Positions 2,603 to 10,502 of a stretch of 10,502 nt of DNA are shown here, piece by piece. The notes below the pieces were generated by a model. It worked only from the letters and a program-made list of their open reading frames with translations, was not told the DNA's origin and did not search any database. A program made the position numbers and the translations under genes. The DNA is taken from IMG/VR virus record IMGVR_UViG_3300007533_000518, positions 1 to 10,502 of that record; one strand, given 5' to 3'. Position 1 is the stretch's first letter; each line of letters opens with the position of its first letter.

Positions 2603-4372
2603 TTATCCTTCTATCTCACCAGCTGACAGTTGTCTTCCAGCAGGAGTTCTTGGAGTTGCTTCGGGTCTTCCCATACCAGCAACCTTAGTAGTAGGCTGCT
2701 CAGGAGCCATAGCCCCTGCTAACTGCTGTAGAGCCATATCCGCCATCATCTCATATAGATTAGCAGCTTCCATATCCTTAGCCTTATCTCTCAGATACGC
2801 TGCTTGTTCTCTATAGTACTGAATCAGAGCTATCATACTATTACTAGGATGTGCCTCGGCCTGGTCAGCTCTTCTTTGTGCTCTCTCCTGTAGCGGGTCT
2901 CCAATATCAGGAAATAACTTTCTAGATACATAGCTATAACTCAACGCAAACTCTGGGTCTAGCATATGAGCAGTAGTAGCCCTTTGGATTAGGTCTCCAG
3001 GTATCTCTATCTCATACTCAGCAGATACTACGCTATAGTCTGGAAGCTTATCAGGATATTTCCAGCCATAAGGTTTGATACCTCTATCTCTTATATCTGC
3101 TAAATCATCATTGTCTATATCAGATAGTGCATCTATTATAGCCTGATGAAAAGGCTTCATTACTTGATTTGCTGAGGCAGCTATCTGGCTCATAACATAA
3201 GCAGTTATCTGTCCAGCTACAGCTCCATGCATAGCCCAACTAACTCCTCCTCTTTGCATCATAGCTTCTAGGTCAAGCTGGGTACTTCTCAATTCTAATG
3301 GTATAGGAGGAGTAGCCAAAAAGTCTACAGAATCATCAGGCCCTCCTCTGAATATAGCCCCACGCTTAAATACATCCTCAGGCTTTACTATAGCATGACC
3401 ACTTCTACTACGCTCAAAGATTCTAGGTTGAGCAGTATCACGCAGAAGTTGTAGTGAGAATGTCCACCATCTATTCCAGGTCTTATAGATATTCTCATTA
3501 GTAGCTATAATAGACTGACCCAGCTCAGCCTTCCATCTATCTCCAGCCACTTTCTGAGTCTGTAGCTTTATTGTAGATGAGTATGTTGGTAGGTAGCCTT
3601 CTGTCAAAGTTCCCATATCAGGCAGACCACCTACAGGAGATATATAAATAGGAATCTTCTTAAATCTTGTAGGCTCAAACTTTACCAGACTATCGCCTAT
3701 GACTATAGCGTTCCATGCTATAGCAGTAAAGGGAAAATTGTCTGCTATCTCCATCCACCAATAGTCGTAAACTACTACATTGCGGCCTACAGTAGCCTGC
3801 CATTGAGGATAGGGACTAGATAATTTCCAGTCATTACGCTTAGCCAGATTAACAGCTTGTTTAGCTGTAGTAGCGTAAATATGAGCTACTTCATCTAATC
3901 CTAGCATATTATCCCACATAGGAAAAACCTCAGCAGGATTAAGAGGCTCCTTATAAGTTCTACTACCATCATCAGAGTTCATGCTGAGCATAGCATACCA
4001 TCCAGTAGCAAGCATGAAGCCTATGAAGGTTCTCAATATGCCTCGCCTAGGATTTGACCTACGAAATGTATTATCAGCATCCTTCCAACTGATATTAAAG
4101 TACCTATTAACCTGAGATACTGCACTTGCTACATTAAGGTCAGACATATCATAGTCTCTGACTCTATGAGGTATCTTGGTATCTAGAAGATGTAGTGTAA
4201 GATTATATAGTGCTCTGGGGTCATTACCCACAAAGGATTCCATCTTCTCCTGCTTAAGCTCGTCTATCATCTCTATAAGTCTATACCACCGCTTCATAGC
4301 CTCATTGCGAGGATTCCAGAAGGTCTTAAGCTCATTACAACGAGATACCACTTCATTTACATTTTGTTTCAT
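2603..4372 (-). CDS. Probable portal (head-tail connector) protein, 589 aa
   Basis: Size, position downstream of the large terminase, helical N-terminus (FWNPRNEAMKRWYRLI), and a low-complexity Q/A/P-rich C-terminal tail typical of portals. The start overlaps the upstream stop (ATGA). Confidence 0.7.
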   Translation of the reverse strand: MKQNVNEVVSRCNELKTFWNPRNEAMKRWYRLIEMIDELKQEKMESFVGNDPRALYNLTLHLLDTKIPHRVRDYDMSDLNVASAVSQVNRYFNISWKDADNTFRRSNPRRGILRTFIGFMLATGWYAMLSMNSDDGSRTYKEPLNPAEVFPMWDNMLGLDEVAHIYATTAKQAVNLAKRNDWKLSSPYPQWQATVGRNVVVYDYWWMEIADNFPFTAIAWNAIVIGDSLVKFEPTRFKKIPIYISPVGGLPDMGTLTEGYLPTYSSTIKLQTQKVAGDRWKAELGQSIIATNENIYKTWNRWWTFSLQLLRDTAQPRIFERSRSGHAIVKPEDVFKRGAIFRGGPDDSVDFLATPPIPLELRSTQLDLEAMMQRGGVSWAMHGAVAGQITAYVMSQIAASANQVMKPFHQAIIDALSDIDNDDLADIRDRGIKPYGWKYPDKLPDYSVVSAEYEIEIPGDLIQRATTAHMLDPEFALSYSYVSRKLFPDIGDPLQERAQRRADQAEAHPSNSMIALIQYYREQAAYLRDKAKDMEAANLYEMMADMALQQLAGAMAPEQPTTKVAGMGRPEATPRTPAGRQLSAGEIEG

Positions 4373-5211: not shown

Positions 5212-6894
5212 CTACCATTCATCAGGCCATCCAGCCGAGCCTGCATAACCTCTCTGTACTGACTGAGCATTTCTGCATACTATAGCAATAGCACCAGCGT
5301 CGTGATGGTCATCTGCACCTACTACAAGGATTCCACTCTTGCTCATAGGATTTCTACGGATATTCTTACACTGGCTCCAGAATCGTATGTCCTGACAGTC
5401 TATATGTTCAAGGTGTCTACTAACCTCAGTAACCATATAAGGCTTAGTGGATAGATTAGTCTGCCAGCCTATTGCTTTTACAAGCTTACCAGTTCTTACA
5501 TCCTCCCTATAGTATAGGTCAGGATAATCTCTAAGATGACTAACTATATCTAGATTATCTTCTGGAGCTATTACCGCATTATTGTAGTAATGTGCTACTT
5601 CCTTCATCAGCAGAGCCATTTCCCACTCATCATAAAAGCCTGCTAGTGTAGCACAATGCTGCATAACTGGAGGAATTTCCTTATCATCCTTACTTTTATA
5701 GCCCTCAAGAAAGTGCCATACATGACCTACTGACTCAGACGTTTTCCCTTTGCCTGGGTCTATAGATACTATATAACCTAAACTATCTTCTCTGTCACAC
5801 CAGATATCTAATGTAGCAGATATAGTATCTTTAGTTCTTGAGTCAGTAGCTACTATATTCTTCTGGCTTTTAGCGGGTATGCAGTAGTGTATCTTATCAA
5901 CTATAACATCAGAGCTGTAAGCTTGGTCTCCTGCTACCAGAAAGCAATTCTCATCATCCTCAGGAAATTCCTGCTCAAATAGAAGAACAGTATCGCCACT
6001 TCTTCTAAGGCTAGCTATCTCAGCTTTCTTATACCTTCTCCATCTAAGCTTAGCCATAGCATCCTGTTCAGACATATCATAGATGTCCATGAGAACCTGC
6101 ATTAACAGTACTTCATCTGACTGGATATTAGATAGTGGGTCTTTATTGTCTTCATCTAGGCAGAATGGGTCTTCAGCATACATAATATACTCTGGTTGAA
6201 TATACCAAGGATAGAAGTGGTGCCTATAGACTGATTTGGCTACAGAAGTTCCTTCCTTAGCTGCTCTATACATCTCACAGAAATCATTATCTTCTCCATT
6301 AGGAGTAGATAATACTCTTATTTTAGTTCCAGGCTTAGCAGGAACTCTCTGAGCAGCTGATGCAAACACCAATTCATGCGTTCCTTCAAACCAGAATCCG
6401 TACTCATCTAGTAGTAGATTATGTATTGGCTCTCCCCTACCAATAGTATAGCTCCTAGAGCTAAAAATATACATGATAGAGTAGAATGGATGCTTAGTAT
6501 CCTTAGTTACCCATGTTAACTCCTCAGCGCTTTTATGCTCAAGCTTAGGAATAGTAGGAATCCTTCTTTCCAGAAACTGATGAAACCGCTTGGCTTTGAT
6601 GATAAGACGCTTAGCATTGGTCTCATCATAGCTAATAATAACTGATACAGTTCCACTAAGAGTTATATTATCAAGATAGAAATCAGCTAGATGAAGGGAT
6701 GTTGCCCCTACAGATGCTGGCTTAACATAGATATCTCTAAATGTAGAAGTCTGAAGCATATCTAGCTGAATAGGATTAAGGATGAACGGAACTAATCTTC
6801 GTTCCTTATCCTCTATCTGGAGTAAGGACTCCATAGTGAGCCGTCTATCTGAGAATAAAGCTTCAGCAGCTTCATCCTGCGATATAGTCTGCAT
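5212..6894 (-). CDS. terL: Terminase large subunit, 560 aa
   Basis: Adenine-binding LNPIQ motif, deviant Walker A (VKPASVGATS), Walker B (NLLLDEY), coupling motif (LSTPNG), FEQEFP motif, and RNase H-like nuclease acidic residues (IVSIDPG ... DDHHDA). AGGAG RBS upstream. Confidence 0.9.
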   Translation of the reverse strand: MQTISQDEAAEALFSDRRLTMESLLQIEDKERRLVPFILNPIQLDMLQTSTFRDIYVKPASVGATSLHLADFYLDNITLSGTVSVIISYDETNAKRLIIKAKRFHQFLERRIPTIPKLEHKSAEELTWVTKDTKHPFYSIMYIFSSRSYTIGRGEPIHNLLLDEYGFWFEGTHELVFASAAQRVPAKPGTKIRVLSTPNGEDNDFCEMYRAAKEGTSVAKSVYRHHFYPWYIQPEYIMYAEDPFCLDEDNKDPLSNIQSDEVLLMQVLMDIYDMSEQDAMAKLRWRRYKKAEIASLRRSGDTVLLFEQEFPEDDENCFLVAGDQAYSSDVIVDKIHYCIPAKSQKNIVATDSRTKDTISATLDIWCDREDSLGYIVSIDPGKGKTSESVGHVWHFLEGYKSKDDKEIPPVMQHCATLAGFYDEWEMALLMKEVAHYYNNAVIAPEDNLDIVSHLRDYPDLYYREDVRTGKLVKAIGWQTNLSTKPYMVTEVSRHLEHIDCQDIRFWSQCKNIRRNPMSKSGILVVGADDHHDAGAIAIVCRNAQSVQRGYAGSAGWPDEW

Positions 6895-7455: not shown

Positions 7456-7990
7456 CGGAAGTTACTCTTATCCTATCAGTCCTAGTTATCTCAACACTCC
7501 TAAGCTTATCCTGATTATTGGTTATAAACTCAGAAAAGTTCCACCCATCACTGCTAATACCTCTCATAGCCTGCTCAAGGATTTGTAGCTGTTGAGGTGT
7601 GTATGCAGTACGGAGTTTTAGGAGATATTCATGCTCCTGTCTAGTCATTATCTCCTCTTCTATAGATTTCCTGAGGATTCTATAATCTTTCTCAAGAACT
7701 AGCTTGAAGTTGCGAAAGAAGTCTAGCTCTATATATTCCTTGCTGAGCTCCTTCCTTATTTCGGGTATCCTTAGTTCAAGCTGGCTAAATGCAGTATCCC
7801 TACGTTGCTCATCTAGCCAGGTCATATCTAGACCCAGCATATATAGAGCTTCTTCGATAGTAATTCCACATGCTAGATAGCCAAAGTATTTAGCTCTATT
7901 ATCATCTCTACGCCAGGGAAGGAGAGTCTGAGCTATAGCAACTTCAGATGGAGTATCTGAGTTAGGAGGCACAGTGGTAGGTTCTATCAT
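7430..7990 (-). CDS. Probable terminase small subunit (HTH-type), 186 aa
   Basis: First gene of the packaging operon. The HTH-like segment YFGYLACGITIEEALYMLGLDMTWLDEQRRDTAF is followed by long helices. Start re-called to the ATG at 7990 because 8008 lies inside the promoter spacer. Confidence 0.6.
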   Translation of the reverse strand: MIEPTTVPPNSDTPSEVAIAQTLLPWRRDDNRAKYFGYLACGITIEEALYMLGLDMTWLDEQRRDTAFSQLELRIPEIRKELSKEYIELDFFRNFKLVLEKDYRILRKSIEEEIMTRQEHEYLLKLRTAYTPQQLQILEQAMRGISSDGWNFSEFITNNQDKLRSVEITRTDRIRVTSDGEKSKDS

Positions 7991-7998
7991 ATCAGTAT

Positions 7999-8027
7999 AG
8001 TATAACATTGTGTACTAGTGTTGTCAA
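7999..8027 (-). promoter_or_regulatory. Sigma70/sigmaA-type promoter P1 (packaging/structural operon)
   Basis: TTGACA (8027-8022), 17 bp, TATACT (8004-7999), with an extended -10 TG (TGT-TATACT). Confidence 0.8.
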
Positions 8028-8074
8028 GGATACAAATACATATTATTATTTATTGTCATTAGTGAATAAGATGG

Positions 8075-8103
8075 TTGACAACTATATCCTGATATGATAT
8101 AAT
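8075..8103 (+). promoter_or_regulatory. Perfect-consensus sigma70/sigmaA promoter P2 (zinc-finger arm)
   Basis: TTGACA (8075-8080), 17 bp, TATAAT (8098-8103), with an extended -10 TG. An AT-rich UP-like tract lies at 8031-8055. Confidence 0.88.
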
Positions 8104-8109
8104 ATGGTT

Positions 8110-8304
8110 ATGAAGTGTGAGATATGTGGAAGAAGTAATCTAACTGCTAGAGAGCTAGCAGTACATAGAAAGCTTTTCCATAATGAACAGCCTCAGCAGA
8201 TTAGTCCTATGTCTGCTAAGGTATGTCCTGACTGTGGAGCTGCACTAGTTCTTCAGGAAGGTTGTGAGTATTGTAGCATATGTGGATACAGTAAATGTGG
8301 ATAA
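8110..8304 (+). CDS. 64-aa double zinc-binding protein: C2H2 finger plus NrdJ-like C-terminal zinc ribbon
   Basis: C-x2-C-x12-H-x4-H (CEIC...ELAVHRKLFH), then CPDCGAALVLQEGCEYCSICGYSKCG. The ATG at 8104 abuts the -10 box, so the ATG at 8110 is the likelier, leaderless start. Confidence 0.8.
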   Translation: MKCEICGRSNLTARELAVHRKLFHNEQPQQISPMSAKVCPDCGAALVLQEGCEYCSICGYSKCG

Positions 8305-8369
8305 GATGATAAGTATAAAAGAAATATAATTATAATTCCGTATCAGATAGAACTAGGAACATTGAGCAA

Positions 8370-8552
8370 ATGTTAGCTAAGTTAATATGCAAGTTATTCA
8401 AGCATAGATGGCTCTTTGAAATAGGAGTAATAGACCCGCCCAGTAAGAGCATCTGTCATATACCTAGTAGTGAAATTAAACTCATATTCTGTACTAGGTG
8501 TGGAAAGATTATATATGATAGAGAGGAGATACTAAAATTGACATCTGGCTAA
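8370..8552 (+). CDS. DUF1660-like small phage zinc-binding protein, 60 aa
   Basis: KLICKLFKHRW ... CTRCG matches the recalled family pattern KLxCKLFGHKW...CxRC. Confidence 0.6.
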   Translation: MLAKLICKLFKHRWLFEIGVIDPPSKSICHIPSSEIKLIFCTRCGKIIYDREEILKLTSG

Positions 8553-9007
8553 CTGTCTGTCGTAAAACTGTTCCTAAGTGTGCTTACTGCGGAGAACCTA
8601 TACACTTGGGGGAGATAATGGTAGCTGGCAGGATATGGAAGACTAGAGATGGAAAGGTAAGGAGATTTGTAAAGAACTTAAGATGGCACGGACAGAAGAT
8701 AGTAAACCCAGAAGAGCCTCCAATATGCTGCTGGCTAGAAGCAGGTCTAGAGTATCTACGAACTCACCCAAAAGAAGAGACAAGAGGAAGAAAGCAGCTT
8801 CAGCTAACAAAAGCACAAAAAATAGAAAGGTCAAAGATATCAAGACAAAGGGCAAGGTTAGTCCAAAAACTAAAGACACTAATGGAAGTTCCCCTAGCAA
8901 ATCAGGAGCAAAAGGATATAAACGATATAATAAAGATAGGAAGCCAGATAGAACAGTTGAAAGAGAGGATAATACCACTAGGAGGACTGCCTCCGAACTG
9001 GGAATAG
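8537..9007 (+). CDS. Zinc-finger plus basic coiled-coil protein, about 156 aa (probable ATT start)
   Basis: The frame is open from 8522. Extending upstream of the TTG at 8606 adds DIWLTVCRKTVPKCAYCGEPIH, which supplies a CxxC to pair with the later WH...CCW. GAGGAG (8523-8528) is 8 nt before the ATT at 8537. Confidence 0.65.
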   Translation: MDIWLTVCRKTVPKCAYCGEPIHLGEIMVAGRIWKTRDGKVRRFVKNLRWHGQKIVNPEEPPICCWLEAGLEYLRTHPKEETRGRKQLQLTKAQKIERSKISRQRARLVQKLKTLMEVPLANQEQKDINDIIKIGSQIEQLKERIIPLGGLPPNWE

Positions 9008-9351
9008 AATGGATAGGAGATTATTGCCCAGACAATAAACCCCATAACTTAATATGTATATATGAGTTGCATGGCGGAAGCTTATTTAGGTGTAGTAATT
9101 GTAGAAAGTATATATGGCTTCCTACATTTATTAAGGATGCTGCTAAGCTCGATAGTCTCATTGACAGCTATGGAACTACTACTGGGTATTGCAAGTATCT
9201 TGATACTAATAGAAGTGCTAAGATGCTAGTAGCTAAGCTGCAAGACCTATGGTATGCTAGAGCTAAGATTAAGGATGATAGGAAGTTTACTAAATTGGTA
9301 GTTAGAACTATGGAAGACAGCGAGTATGATAGGAGGAACAATGGCACTTAA
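8998..9351 (+). CDS. Small zinc-ribbon protein, about 117 aa (start uncertain, CTG candidate)
   Basis: The protein-like part of ORF 8683..9351 begins at GIEWIGDYCPDNKPH...FRCSNCRKY (C-x5-H...CxxC). GGAGG is at 8981-8985, with in-frame CTG at 8998 or ATA at 9004. Confidence 0.55.
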   Translation: MGIEWIGDYCPDNKPHNLICIYELHGGSLFRCSNCRKYIWLPTFIKDAAKLDSLIDSYGTTTGYCKYLDTNRSAKMLVAKLQDLWYARAKIKDDRKFTKLVVRTMEDSEYDRRNNGT

Positions 9352-9799
9352 AGAAACCGTTACTAAGGAAGAAGTACTAAAATTTGGAAGCGTAGCAAAG
9401 ACTCTAGTGGCAAGACATAACGTAACTTCACCTATGAGACTAGTTATTATAGCTTCTACCGAGAATCCAGATAGCAGCCATACTGTTCTATTTGATTTTG
9501 AGGAGGAGCCTGCTCAGGAATTAGCACCGAAGCAACCTCGCAGGCCAGTCCCTATACCACCTGAGCCAAGAATAGCAGTAGTAAAAATCCCTAGAGGTGT
9601 AAATGCTAAGGCTCTGGAAGGATTCATCAATCAGCTTGCCAATACTATAAAAGGCCAGGTGTTTGTTGTACCTATAAACTTTGAAGTGCTGCTGGGCAAT
9701 ACTGCTAAAGAAGAGGTGGAGAAGATACATAACCAGATACACAAGATGCTTGATATAAATCCAGAATCAGATGAGCCACCAGGGATAGCTGGTAAGTAG
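9341..9799 (+). CDS. Hypothetical phage protein, 152 aa
   Basis: AGGAGGA (9331-9337) favours the ATG at 9341 (MALKETV) over 9326. Two apparent domains are joined by a Pro-rich linker. Confidence 0.75.
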   Translation: MALKETVTKEEVLKFGSVAKTLVARHNVTSPMRLVIIASTENPDSSHTVLFDFEEEPAQELAPKQPRRPVPIPPEPRIAVVKIPRGVNAKALEGFINQLANTIKGQVFVVPINFEVLLGNTAKEEVEKIHNQIHKMLDINPESDEPPGIAGK

Positions 9800-9969
9800 C
9801 AATTTTACAAATCCAAATTCTGCGAAGAGACATAGTTATAAAGTATCCTCACCAAAGTTGCCTGACCGTATGGGTGGTGTTCTTTCATTTAGGACATAAC
9901 CATATGGGAGCAATATCCTTAGGAATAAATCATACAAGAACAGGCTTATCAAAACATACCGAGCAAGGC

Positions 9970-9981
9970 GAACATATGTTC
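9970..9981. promoter_or_regulatory. LexA-type SOS box 1 (GAACATATGTTC)
   Basis: Perfect GAAC-N4-GTTC palindrome ending 2 bp before the -35 of P3. Confidence 0.75.
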
Positions 9982-9983
9982 TA

Positions 9984-10012
9984 TTGACAAACGGTTCTCG
10001 ATATGGTATGAT
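9984..10012 (+). promoter_or_regulatory. Sigma70/sigmaA promoter P3
   Basis: TTGACA (9984-9989), 17 bp, TATGAT (10007-10012), with an extended -10 TG. The RBS AAGGAGGT follows at 10019-10026. Confidence 0.85.
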
Positions 10013-10031
10013 ATACCAAAGGAGGTGTGCC

Positions 10032-10205
10032 ATGACAGGGCAGGAACTAAATACCGAGTGGTGTCGCCGAATGGACATCACAACTAAAAGCATGATACAA
10101 TGCCGAGAACAGGGTGCTGTATCACAAGAGTACCTCGATGGGTTCATTGAGGCAGTTAAAACGAGCATGAACCTATTGGAGGCAATCCTCACCGAGCAGC
10201 AATAG
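10032..10205 (+). CDS. 57-aa hypothetical protein, putatively SOS-regulated
   Basis: AAGGAGGT lies 5 nt before the ATG at 10032 (MTGQELNTEW...). The track start at 9984 is the TTG of the -35 box and is not credible. Confidence 0.75.
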   Translation: MTGQELNTEWCRRMDITTKSMIQCREQGAVSQEYLDGFIEAVKTSMNLLEAILTEQQ

Positions 10206-10213
10206 GATGATTA

Positions 10214-10238
10214 GAACATATGTTCCGAGCAAAGGTTC
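10214..10238. promoter_or_regulatory. LexA-type SOS box 2 (GAACATATGTTC, 10214-10225) with an adjacent degenerate box (GAGCAAAGGTTC, 10227-10238)
   Basis: The 12-mer is identical to box 1, intergenic, and upstream of P4. Confidence 0.7.
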
Positions 10239-10272
10239 TGTTAATTTCCTAGAACATTATGTCAACTATCCC

Positions 10273-10301
10273 TTGACAACTCAAACCGAGTATGGTACAA
10301 T
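10273..10301 (+). promoter_or_regulatory. Sigma70/sigmaA promoter P4
   Basis: TTGACA (10273-10278), 17 bp, TACAAT (10296-10301), with an extended -10 TG. Confidence 0.85.
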
Positions 10302-10309
10302 CTGATTAC

Positions 10310-10379
10310 ATGATGGAATCACAGACCATCATTGGTACTGGTAAAGTGGCAACAGTACCGGCACCTTAACAATTAAATA
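10310..10379 (+). promoter_or_regulatory. Structured 5' leader: two hairpins followed by a boxA-like antitermination element
   Basis: Stem ATGATGG/CCATCAT (10310-10332), stem GGTACTG/CAGTACC (10334-10359), then GCACCTTAACAATTAAATA (10361-10379), which resembles boxA GCTCTTTAACAA. Confidence 0.55.
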
Positions 10380-10396
10380 AAGAAACGGGAGGTACA

Positions 10397-10502
10397 ATGG
10401 CAAACGGAAAACAGAAGCAAGCACAAGCCGAACCACAGGATTCAGTTGCACAGGAGACAGTCACTGAGGAACAGCCATCACAAGAGCAACTCAAATCCCA
10501 AC
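10397..10502 (+). CDS. 5' end of a hypothetical protein with a Q/E-rich N-terminus (truncated)
   Basis: GGGAGGT RBS, then the ATG at 10397. MANGKQKQAQAEPQDSVAQETVTEEQPSQEQLKSQ is open to the window edge. Confidence 0.75.
   Translation, partial: MANGKQKQAQAEPQDSVAQETVTEEQPSQEQLKSQ

Follow-up and report, generated by a model that had tools for sequence, protein, structure and literature searches.

The stretch of DNA analysed in this work (the window) is the entire contig UViG_3300007533_000518 of the IMG/VR database, which is 10,502 bp long and belongs to an uncultured family of phages whose genomes measure about 43 kb. Two identical and perfect palindromes of the LexA operator type, GAACATATGTTC, are located at 9970-9981 and 10214-10225, adjoining near-consensus sigma-70 promoters and placed around an open reading frame (ORF) of 57 amino acids (aa). 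This arrangement had been described in a first-pass annotation made from the letters alone, and the present analysis has confirmed it. The features of this region are the following; the position of box 1 relative to promoter P3 was calculated by taking the start site 7 nt past the -10 element.

9968..9983, no strand: box 1, LexA-type operator GC-GAACATATGTTC-TA, exact match, centred at -43.5 of P3
9984..10012, plus strand: promoter P3, TTGACA at 9984, 17 bp, extended -10 element TG-n-TATGAT, 11 of 12 consensus matches
10032..10205, plus strand: 57-aa orphan ORF, ATG at 10032, with AGGAGG at 10020-10025, 6 nt upstream of the ATG
10212..10227, no strand: box 2, LexA-type operator TA-GAACATATGTTC-CG, centred at +200.5 of P3 and -88.5 of P4
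10227..10238, no strand: degenerate box GAGCAAAGGTTC in tandem with box 2 at an offset of 13 bp, centred at -75.5 of P4, with one core mismatch
10273..10301, plus strand: promoter P4, TTGACA at 10273, 17 bp, TG-n-TACAAT, 11 of 12 consensus matches, kept in relatives

A scan of the whole contig for the motif GAAC-N4-GTTC found these two sites only, against 0.06 expected, and none of 200 shuffled sequences reached two. The two boxes with their flanks form a perfect inverted pair of 14-mers (GAACATATGTTCTA / TAGAACATATGTTC). Box 1 is separated from the -35 element of P3 by just 2 bp (TA), and box 2 begins 8 nt past the stop codon of the 57-aa ORF, with the -35 element of P4 lying 48 bp downstream. 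Sites with one core mismatch are at chance level in the window when taken alone (2 seen, 3.4 expected). The degenerate tandem copy at 10227 gains its standing from the relatives: the counterpart position is box-like in loci L006, L009, L013 and L025 (L-numbers are the labels of the retrieved loci), with a perfect GAACAAAGGTTC in L009, and in L025 it is the better of the two boxes. A further weak site at 9986-9997, which had also been listed in the P3 spacer, has been discarded, as it carries two core mismatches, a class found at chance level (35 in the window, 38 expected), and no box is found there in relatives.

The LexA consensus of Bacillus subtilis is CGAACATATGTTCG (PMC8270828), and the 12-mer of the window boxes is identical to its core at 12 of 12 positions, including the ATAT centre, although the LexA motif of the phage host may differ. 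Compared with the 14-nt published consensus, box 1 matches at 13 and box 2 at 12 positions (PMC8270828). The LexA sites of prophage SPbeta have the same aGAAC..GTTCt flanks (PMC8270828). The exact 16-mer TAGAACATATGTTCTA was also scanned in a metagenome collection, yielding at least 120 loci with 142 flanking ORFs. At about 103 of the 120 sampled sites the 16-mer was intergenic, even in contigs with a guanine-plus-cytosine (GC) content of 60-75%, and the flanking ORFs were headed by Y-family polymerase (5) and RecA (4), the latter equalled by phage holin (4), with Peptidase_S24 (2) and a PHP-domain protein (1) at lower counts. The 16-mer lies upstream of the four recA, the five Y-family polymerase and the two S24/LexA-like genes, in contigs whose GC fraction ranges from 0.31 to 0.74, and in six metagenome cases it is placed inside the spacer between the -35 and -10 elements. 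Given this location ahead of SOS genes in bacterial contigs from metagenomes, TAGAACATATGTTCTA is, as judged from its genomic context, a real and working SOS-gene operator, TA flanks included, in uncultured bacteria of widely differing GC content. The assignment of the palindromes as LexA-type operators has thus been borne out by the B. subtilis consensus core, by the sites upstream of SOS genes and by conservation in the phage family and in unrelated phages, and the label is supported at the level of sequence.

More than 120 related contigs were retrieved, about 28 of which measure 40-47 kb and are evidently of unit length. Boxes are present at corresponding places in 13 of the 16 relatives that include the region, with the family consensus tAG[A/C]ACAWATGT[T/G]CTA. 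The family loci contain 27 distinct GMACAWATGTKC sites against 0.9 expected, and the TA flank is found on 35 of 54 half-sites. The composite of box, TA and TTGACA occurs in L007, L009, L017, L025, L037, L043, L134 and L139, and persists in L037 and L043 with a terminase only about 40% identical. The position of box 2 is kept in L006, L009, L013 and L025, and at least one GAAC half is kept at every family site except two. Boxes are retained without the P3 cassette in L003, L005, L006 and L013, and are missing from L012, L008, L022 and L032.

The scan of viral contigs for the composite GMACAWATGTKCTATTGACA recovered family members and two unrelated phages, L141 and L137. L141 is a 42.4-kb contig of 58% GC with a class II ribonucleotide reductase and ThyX, and it carries 12 strict boxes within 1.6 kb, nearly all of them TAGAACATATGTTCTA, in the same layout as the window: boxes, a box-TA-TTGACA promoter, a single small gene, boxes again and the next promoter. 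L137/L140, a 59.8-kb contig of 48% GC with a T4-type terminase, has 5 strict boxes in 120 bp and none in the remaining 14 kb. More box arrays were found in the metagenome contigs L242, L247, L188, L209 and L214, with small genes flanked by boxes in L247 and L188. In L141:9281-10895 the 12 near-identical TAGAACATATGTTCTA sites are accompanied by many copies of a second repeat, CGGGCAGGGTA, around a 162-aa gene, whose product is kinase-like by eye (DxHxxN ... DLG) without Pfam support.

Within the regions compared, neither tblastx nor all-against-all phmmer detected any protein common to L141, L137/L140 and the family, except one zinc ribbon resembling the C-terminus of ribonucleotide reductase. 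Because unrelated phages share the operator layout without a detectable shared protein, a host factor, most likely LexA, is favoured. A phage-private repressor is disfavoured because one would expect it to be carried along with its operators and to vary from lineage to lineage, and a conserved host protein explains more simply the pattern of boxes across lineages. Unlike a lambda-type immunity region, the locus has no adjacent repressor gene, and the operator is common to lineages with unrelated terminases and GC contents of 41-58%. We therefore lean, with moderate confidence, towards the two palindromes being Gram-positive-type LexA operators controlled by host LexA in the early region of an apparently non-integrating phage, and we infer that the LexA of the phage host is the binder and that its binding is repressive. 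A host LexA dimer on box 1, with a footprint touching the -35 element of P3, would hold down P3 and the small cargo gene. LexA on box 2 and its degenerate tandem partner, a pair that follows the P3 unit and precedes P4 by 75-90 bp, would limit read-through from P3 or modulate P4, which in turn would drive a conserved 189-aa protein and, further on, replication genes. Control would be lifted by RecA-stimulated cleavage of LexA in the SOS response, or by titration of LexA as copies of the phage DNA accumulate.

Several observations weigh against control by host LexA. The LexA of the phage host may recognize a different motif. Box 1 is located just upstream of the -35 element, and host SOS promoters in the same metagenome scan carry the site in the spacer. 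The LexA footprint of 18-20 bp (PMC4551915) would touch only the first bases of the P3 -35 element when placed on box 1, and box 2, at -88.5 of P4, is too distant for simple occlusion. A LexA regulon would not usually contain 12 near-identical sites in one array. In many relatives, among them L003, L005, L006, L013, L017 and L025, GCAC/GTGC replaces GAAC/GTTC in one half-site, systematically so in one clade, and two orthologous sites have both halves changed (GCACATATGTGC), so GAAC/GTTC is not invariant across orthologous sites. These GCAC/GTGC half-sites are conserved and do not correspond to random decay, and the ATAT centre and the TA flanks of the boxes are conserved as well as the GAAC arms, whereas the Bacillus/Clostridioides LexA sites looked up vary otherwise, with GAAC retained and GTTT as the second half. 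Finally, in the close relatives L012 and L008 another repeat, CATGAATCA, takes the position of the boxes, and this swap weighs towards a phage-encoded specificity, for which such swapping is typical.

These same variants, together with the repeat swap, support an alternative in which the boxes are read by a phage-encoded protein, either a diverged one resembling the LexA DNA-binding domain or another dimeric protein, that would time the early-to-middle transition by shutting off P3 or activating it from -43.5. The centre of box 1 coincides with the site from which gp6 of phage GIL01, a truncated LexA homologue, activates transcription (PMC6182141), a point that also counts against repression by LexA. 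The fixed offsets of the tandem pairs (13, 14 or 16 bp) and the arrays, which reach 12 sites, point in the same direction, as do the many small zinc-ribbon or uncharacterized early proteins without assignment and the distinct palindrome GTTGCATGATGCAAC of a neighbouring promoter, which makes the existence of phage-specific regulators probable. On the other side, no early gene that co-varies with the presence or absence of boxes was found within the family, and no helix-turn-helix (HTH), winged HTH, cI, LexA_DNA_bind or S24 domain was recognized in the early regions of four relatives. In addition, three lineages of 41%, 48% and 58% GC have the operator in common without a detectable common protein in the regions compared, the identical 16-mer serves as a bacterial SOS-gene operator, and P3 and P4 are already near consensus, so that an activator should be unnecessary. 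A phage-encoded reader is regarded as rather unlikely, and host LexA is retained as the preferred binder.

The GTGC variants were also found in the metagenome contigs L242 and L247. In the two close relatives with the alternative repeat (L012:5550-5800 and L008:1-180), at least six direct repeats of CATGAATCA / ATGATTCA are present where the boxes would be. In three of the relatives without the P3 cassette, direct repeats of a half-site-like motif, ATGAGAACAAT, about 15-16 bp apart, occupy the space between both box groups (L005:1230-1330, L006:3540-3580 and L013:6270-6350); this motif occurs as a single copy in the window, at about 9949-9956. A sub-clade formed by L017, L023, L029, L034 and L045 (for example L034:6660-6780) has a second palindrome, G[G/T]ACC-N3-GTAC, as a 14-bp tandem between the GAAC box and the -35 element, which resembles the cyanobacterial type of LexA box.

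The first-pass annotation had gone further and proposed a host-LexA lysis/lysogeny switch of the kind described in GIL01 or coliphage 186, with the 57-aa protein as an antirepressor or LexA co-factor. This proposal has in its favour the presence of LexA-type boxes at early promoters, the fact that GIL01, likewise devoid of integrase and CI repressor, depends on LexA together with small proteins (PMC4551915, PMC6182141), and the combination of a perfect box with an adjacent weak one, which resembles dinBox1/dinBox1b of that phage. The gene content of the family gives it no support. One complete relative of 43.7 kb was covered end to end (loci L053, L019, L047 and L052), and its recognized genes code for an AAA_25 helicase, an AAA_24 protein, an RNase H-like protein, a DNA methylase, a dCMP deaminase, a family A DNA polymerase (PolA) with exonuclease, MazG and HNH proteins. 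Among its scanned integrase-sized ORFs there was no match to an integrase, resolvase, partition or repressor gene in Pfam or PHROGs, and neither the window nor the early regions of the four relatives gave a match to HTH_3, cI or S24. With its DNA polymerase, helicase and nucleotide metabolism genes, the gene content of this relative looks virulent.

Two further results are contrary to a switch. The back-to-back promoters P1 and P2, which serve the terminase, portal, capsid and first early genes, carry no box, and because of this LexA alone could not silence the structural genes. Moreover, no family contig was found embedded in a longer one, all the long contigs being of unit length (40-47 kb). 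A carrier state like that of GIL01 might exist, with nothing in the data in its support, and the lysis/lysogeny switch has been left as improbable.

The role assigned to the 57-aa protein in that switch could not be sustained either. The ORF is restricted to the window and the identical contig L002, was not called as a gene by the Joint Genome Institute (JGI), and has no homologue in 5.8 billion proteins, in cultured phages or in the relatives, nor any match in Pfam, PHROGs or NCBIfam. The AlphaFold2 model, obtained from single-sequence input, consists of three helices (3-13, 18-26 and 32-56) with no beta wing (predicted local distance difference test, pLDDT, 86.6), and has no fold match in the PDB. 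Behind the same promoter, relatives have other, unrelated proteins in this slot (38-85 aa, with several zinc ribbons among them), and L141 has the 162-aa protein. A co-repressor or antirepressor role is disfavoured because an essential part of the circuit would be conserved wherever the boxes are, and this ORF is absent from every relative that keeps them. The 57-aa gene is best seen as lineage-specific, interchangeable cargo of a hypervariable slot bracketed by boxes, and not as a conserved part of the circuit. Its expression is plausible in view of a strong Shine-Dalgarno site and a strong promoter.

The changing content of the slot also raises the question of whether the boxes act mainly at the DNA level, as recombination linkers for promoter-gene cassettes or as a multi-copy decoy that would soak up LexA or another protein after replication. 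The boxes bracket a slot whose content is different in every phage, the two copies are identical inverted 14-mers, unrelated phages and metagenome contigs repeat the bracketed-cassette layout, and perfect sites in arrays of 5 to 12 are located away from any promoter. However, the strict 2-bp register with the -35 element in many phages points to transcription, four relatives (L003, L005, L006 and L013) keep the boxes without the P3 cassette, and a repeat of 12-16 bp is short for homologous recombination. The titration part is only a proposal. A primarily DNA-level function is given little credence, and transcriptional control by host LexA is kept as the preferred explanation.

Compared with the Gram-positive LexA (DinR) site, known as SOS box or Cheo box, the window boxes have an identical 12-bp core, the preferred ATAT centre, the inverted repeat and adjoining sigma-A-type promoters, but they differ in the flanks (TA versus CG) and in the location upstream of the -35 element instead of within the promoter, and relatives of the window phage use GCAC/GTGC half-sites. 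Tectivirus GIL01 of Bacillus thuringiensis, in which LexA acts with gp7 at P1 and P3 and the LexA homologue gp6 is an activator, has in common with the window phage the lack of a recognized integrase or CI repressor, several LexA boxes at early and replication gene promoters, a strong box beside a weak one, one site centred at -43.5, and small phage proteins nearby. On the contrary, GIL01 is a 15-kb protein-primed tectivirus with proven lysogeny and with boxes located downstream of the start site or of the -35 element, whereas the window phage has about 43 kb, is tailed-phage-like, encodes PolA and has a structural-gene promoter without box. The window family also lacks a conserved gp7-like or gp6-like protein, as judged by conservation, domains and fold.

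Coliphage 186 Tum and the antirepressors of the Gifsy/Fels type also have a small gene right behind a LexA-boxed promoter, but they need a CI-type repressor as target, which was not found here, and the small gene of the window is not conserved and shows no similarity to antirepressor families. KorB operators (OB) of the IncP plasmid RK2 are a short perfect palindrome present in about 12 copies, some directly upstream of a -35 element and others distal; KorB is a plasmid-encoded protein of the ParB family, and no ParB-like gene was seen in the window phages. In SPbeta, several aGAAC-N4-GTTCt boxes (yolC/yolD, yorB and yopS/yopT) precede small phage genes of obscure role, and these boxes are bound by LexA in vitro although LexA is not the lysogeny repressor (PMC8270828). 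Unlike the window phage, SPbeta is an integrated prophage of 134 kb that has a repressor system of its own, and its boxes are dispersed instead of framing a variable slot.

The wider pattern, with boxes fused to the -35 element and a variable slot in unrelated virulent-looking phages, is the most interesting part of these results. As a tentative proposal, less firmly held than the control of the window by host LexA, it may represent a mobile LexA box-promoter cassette common to such phages, in which 1 to 12 boxes bracket a small-gene slot, with one of them 2 bp from the -35 element, and through which the SOS state of the host would be read. A handful of temperate phages are known to place genes under LexA. 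If LexA binds these boxes, the novelty would lie in its action on phages without recognizable lysogeny genes, in the fixed geometry of a box centred at -43.5 and fused to the -35 element, and in boxes bracketing an ever-changing small-gene slot that recurs in lineages without a detectable shared protein. Phages devoid of a lysogeny module could then read the host SOS state, and the role of SOS sensing would extend beyond prophage induction to the early accessory genes of environmental phages in general. Box arrays on replicated phage genomes could also soak up LexA and so switch on the host SOS regulon, and the boxes would offer a sequence-only handle on host range, namely hosts with a GAAC-N4-GTTC LexA.

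Concerning the origin of the family, nucleotide searches against cultured phages gave no match, and the identity of the large terminase to that of any cultured phage is at most 25%. A search with box 1 and promoter P3 (9964-10013) gave only chance matches inside genes of cultured phages. In GTDB genomes only two contigs matched (L044 and L045), one of them a 43.8-kb phage contig of unit length, both in metagenome-assembled genomes labelled 'uncultured archaeon'. This archaeal assignment is probably a binning artefact, which is the likelier explanation because the phage has bacterial sigma-70 promoters and Shine-Dalgarno sites.

In the window, the minus strand encodes the large terminase (5212-6894, PHROG 2), a portal-sized protein (2603-4372) and the beginning of a very large protein that continues past the contig edge. 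Stop-codon recoding was considered for 1-2600, a segment with no listed ORF that corresponds to a 1,900-aa gene in relatives, and was rejected, since the ORF exits the contig end and has 867 aa according to JGI. P1 and P2 are consensus promoters with extended -10 elements, located at about 8027 (minus strand) and 8075 (plus strand), and they divide the genome into a leftward packaging and structural arm and a rightward early arm that contains both boxes. The spacer between them (7999-8103) is strongly kept in relatives (for example AATAATCGTATG), and there is no LexA-type box in it.

The first gene of the early arm (8104-8304, plus strand) codes for a protein of 66 aa in which a C-x2-C-x12-H-x4-H finger pattern precedes a zinc ribbon, and this ribbon resembles the C-terminus of B12-dependent ribonucleotide reductase; the protein is kept in 11 of 18 relatives surveyed. 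Further on, at 8606-9351 (plus strand), a long ORF at 8606-9007 (133 aa) overlaps another one in a different frame, 8683-9351 (222 aa), and both have tblastn matches in about 24 relatives, where the first one has an additional N-terminal CxxC segment. Passage from the 8606 frame into the 8683 frame needs a -1 shift near 8995-9007, and the options are a frameshift, overprinting or an internal start.

The other features located around the boxes and downstream of P4 are the following.

9792..9879, plus strand: conserved non-coding junction after the variable upstream gene, with the stop codon within AAGTAG, a short AATTT..AAATT hairpin and the block CACCAAAGTTGCCTGACCGTATGG
10243..10266, plus strand: P4-proximal conserved element ATTTCC-N-GAACATTATGTCAAC, with two core mismatches relative to the LexA box and hence not one
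10310..10359, plus strand: structured P4 leader, with hairpin 1 at 10310-10332 and hairpin 2 at 10334-10359
10397..10502, plus strand: first P4 gene, coding for the 189-aa protein, truncated by the contig end and complete in the identical contig at L002:498-1064

The junction at 9792-9879 is found in the same place in L003, L005, L006, L009, L012, L025, L045 and L023, despite the differing upstream genes. The core ATTATGTC of the P4-proximal element is kept in L006, L007, L009, L012, L013 and L025, and the unrelated phage L137 has it as well. A second short element, ACATTATGTC(A)AC / TTATGTAAAG, often in two copies, adjoins the boxes in the window (10243-10266), in L137:8085-8111 and in L134, L139, L043 and L045.

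The P4 leader was folded sequence by sequence in the relatives. Hairpin 2 (GGTACTG-loop-CAGTACC) has the conserved loop AAGTGGYAAC, and its stems covary, with sequences that differ between relatives and yet remain paired; it is followed by a conserved TTTAACAA. A search of 7900-10502 against Rfam gave no match. This hairpin could be a protein-binding or processing site.

Among 18 relatives surveyed, 15 have the 189-aa protein encoded by the first P4 gene, for which 207 representative homologues were found. It belongs to no Pfam family, and it has no fold match in PDB or BFVD and no match in cultured phages; a comparison with PDB sequences gave weak matches only, the best of them to Hsp90 (E-value 0.014). 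Its confident model (pLDDT 91) shows a small C-terminal alpha/beta domain together with a helix of 50 residues and an acidic tail. Judging from the relative covered by L019, L047 and L052, the P4 operon runs on towards the genes for the helicase and PolA. The next rightward promoter (L002:326-416, minus strand), about 550-640 bp past the window end, has GTTGCATGATGCAAC as its own operator-like palindrome and also a half-site, ATGCAACAG, adjoining the -35 element. It is kept in relatives, and its presence suggests that the early arm has another regulator, distinct from the first.

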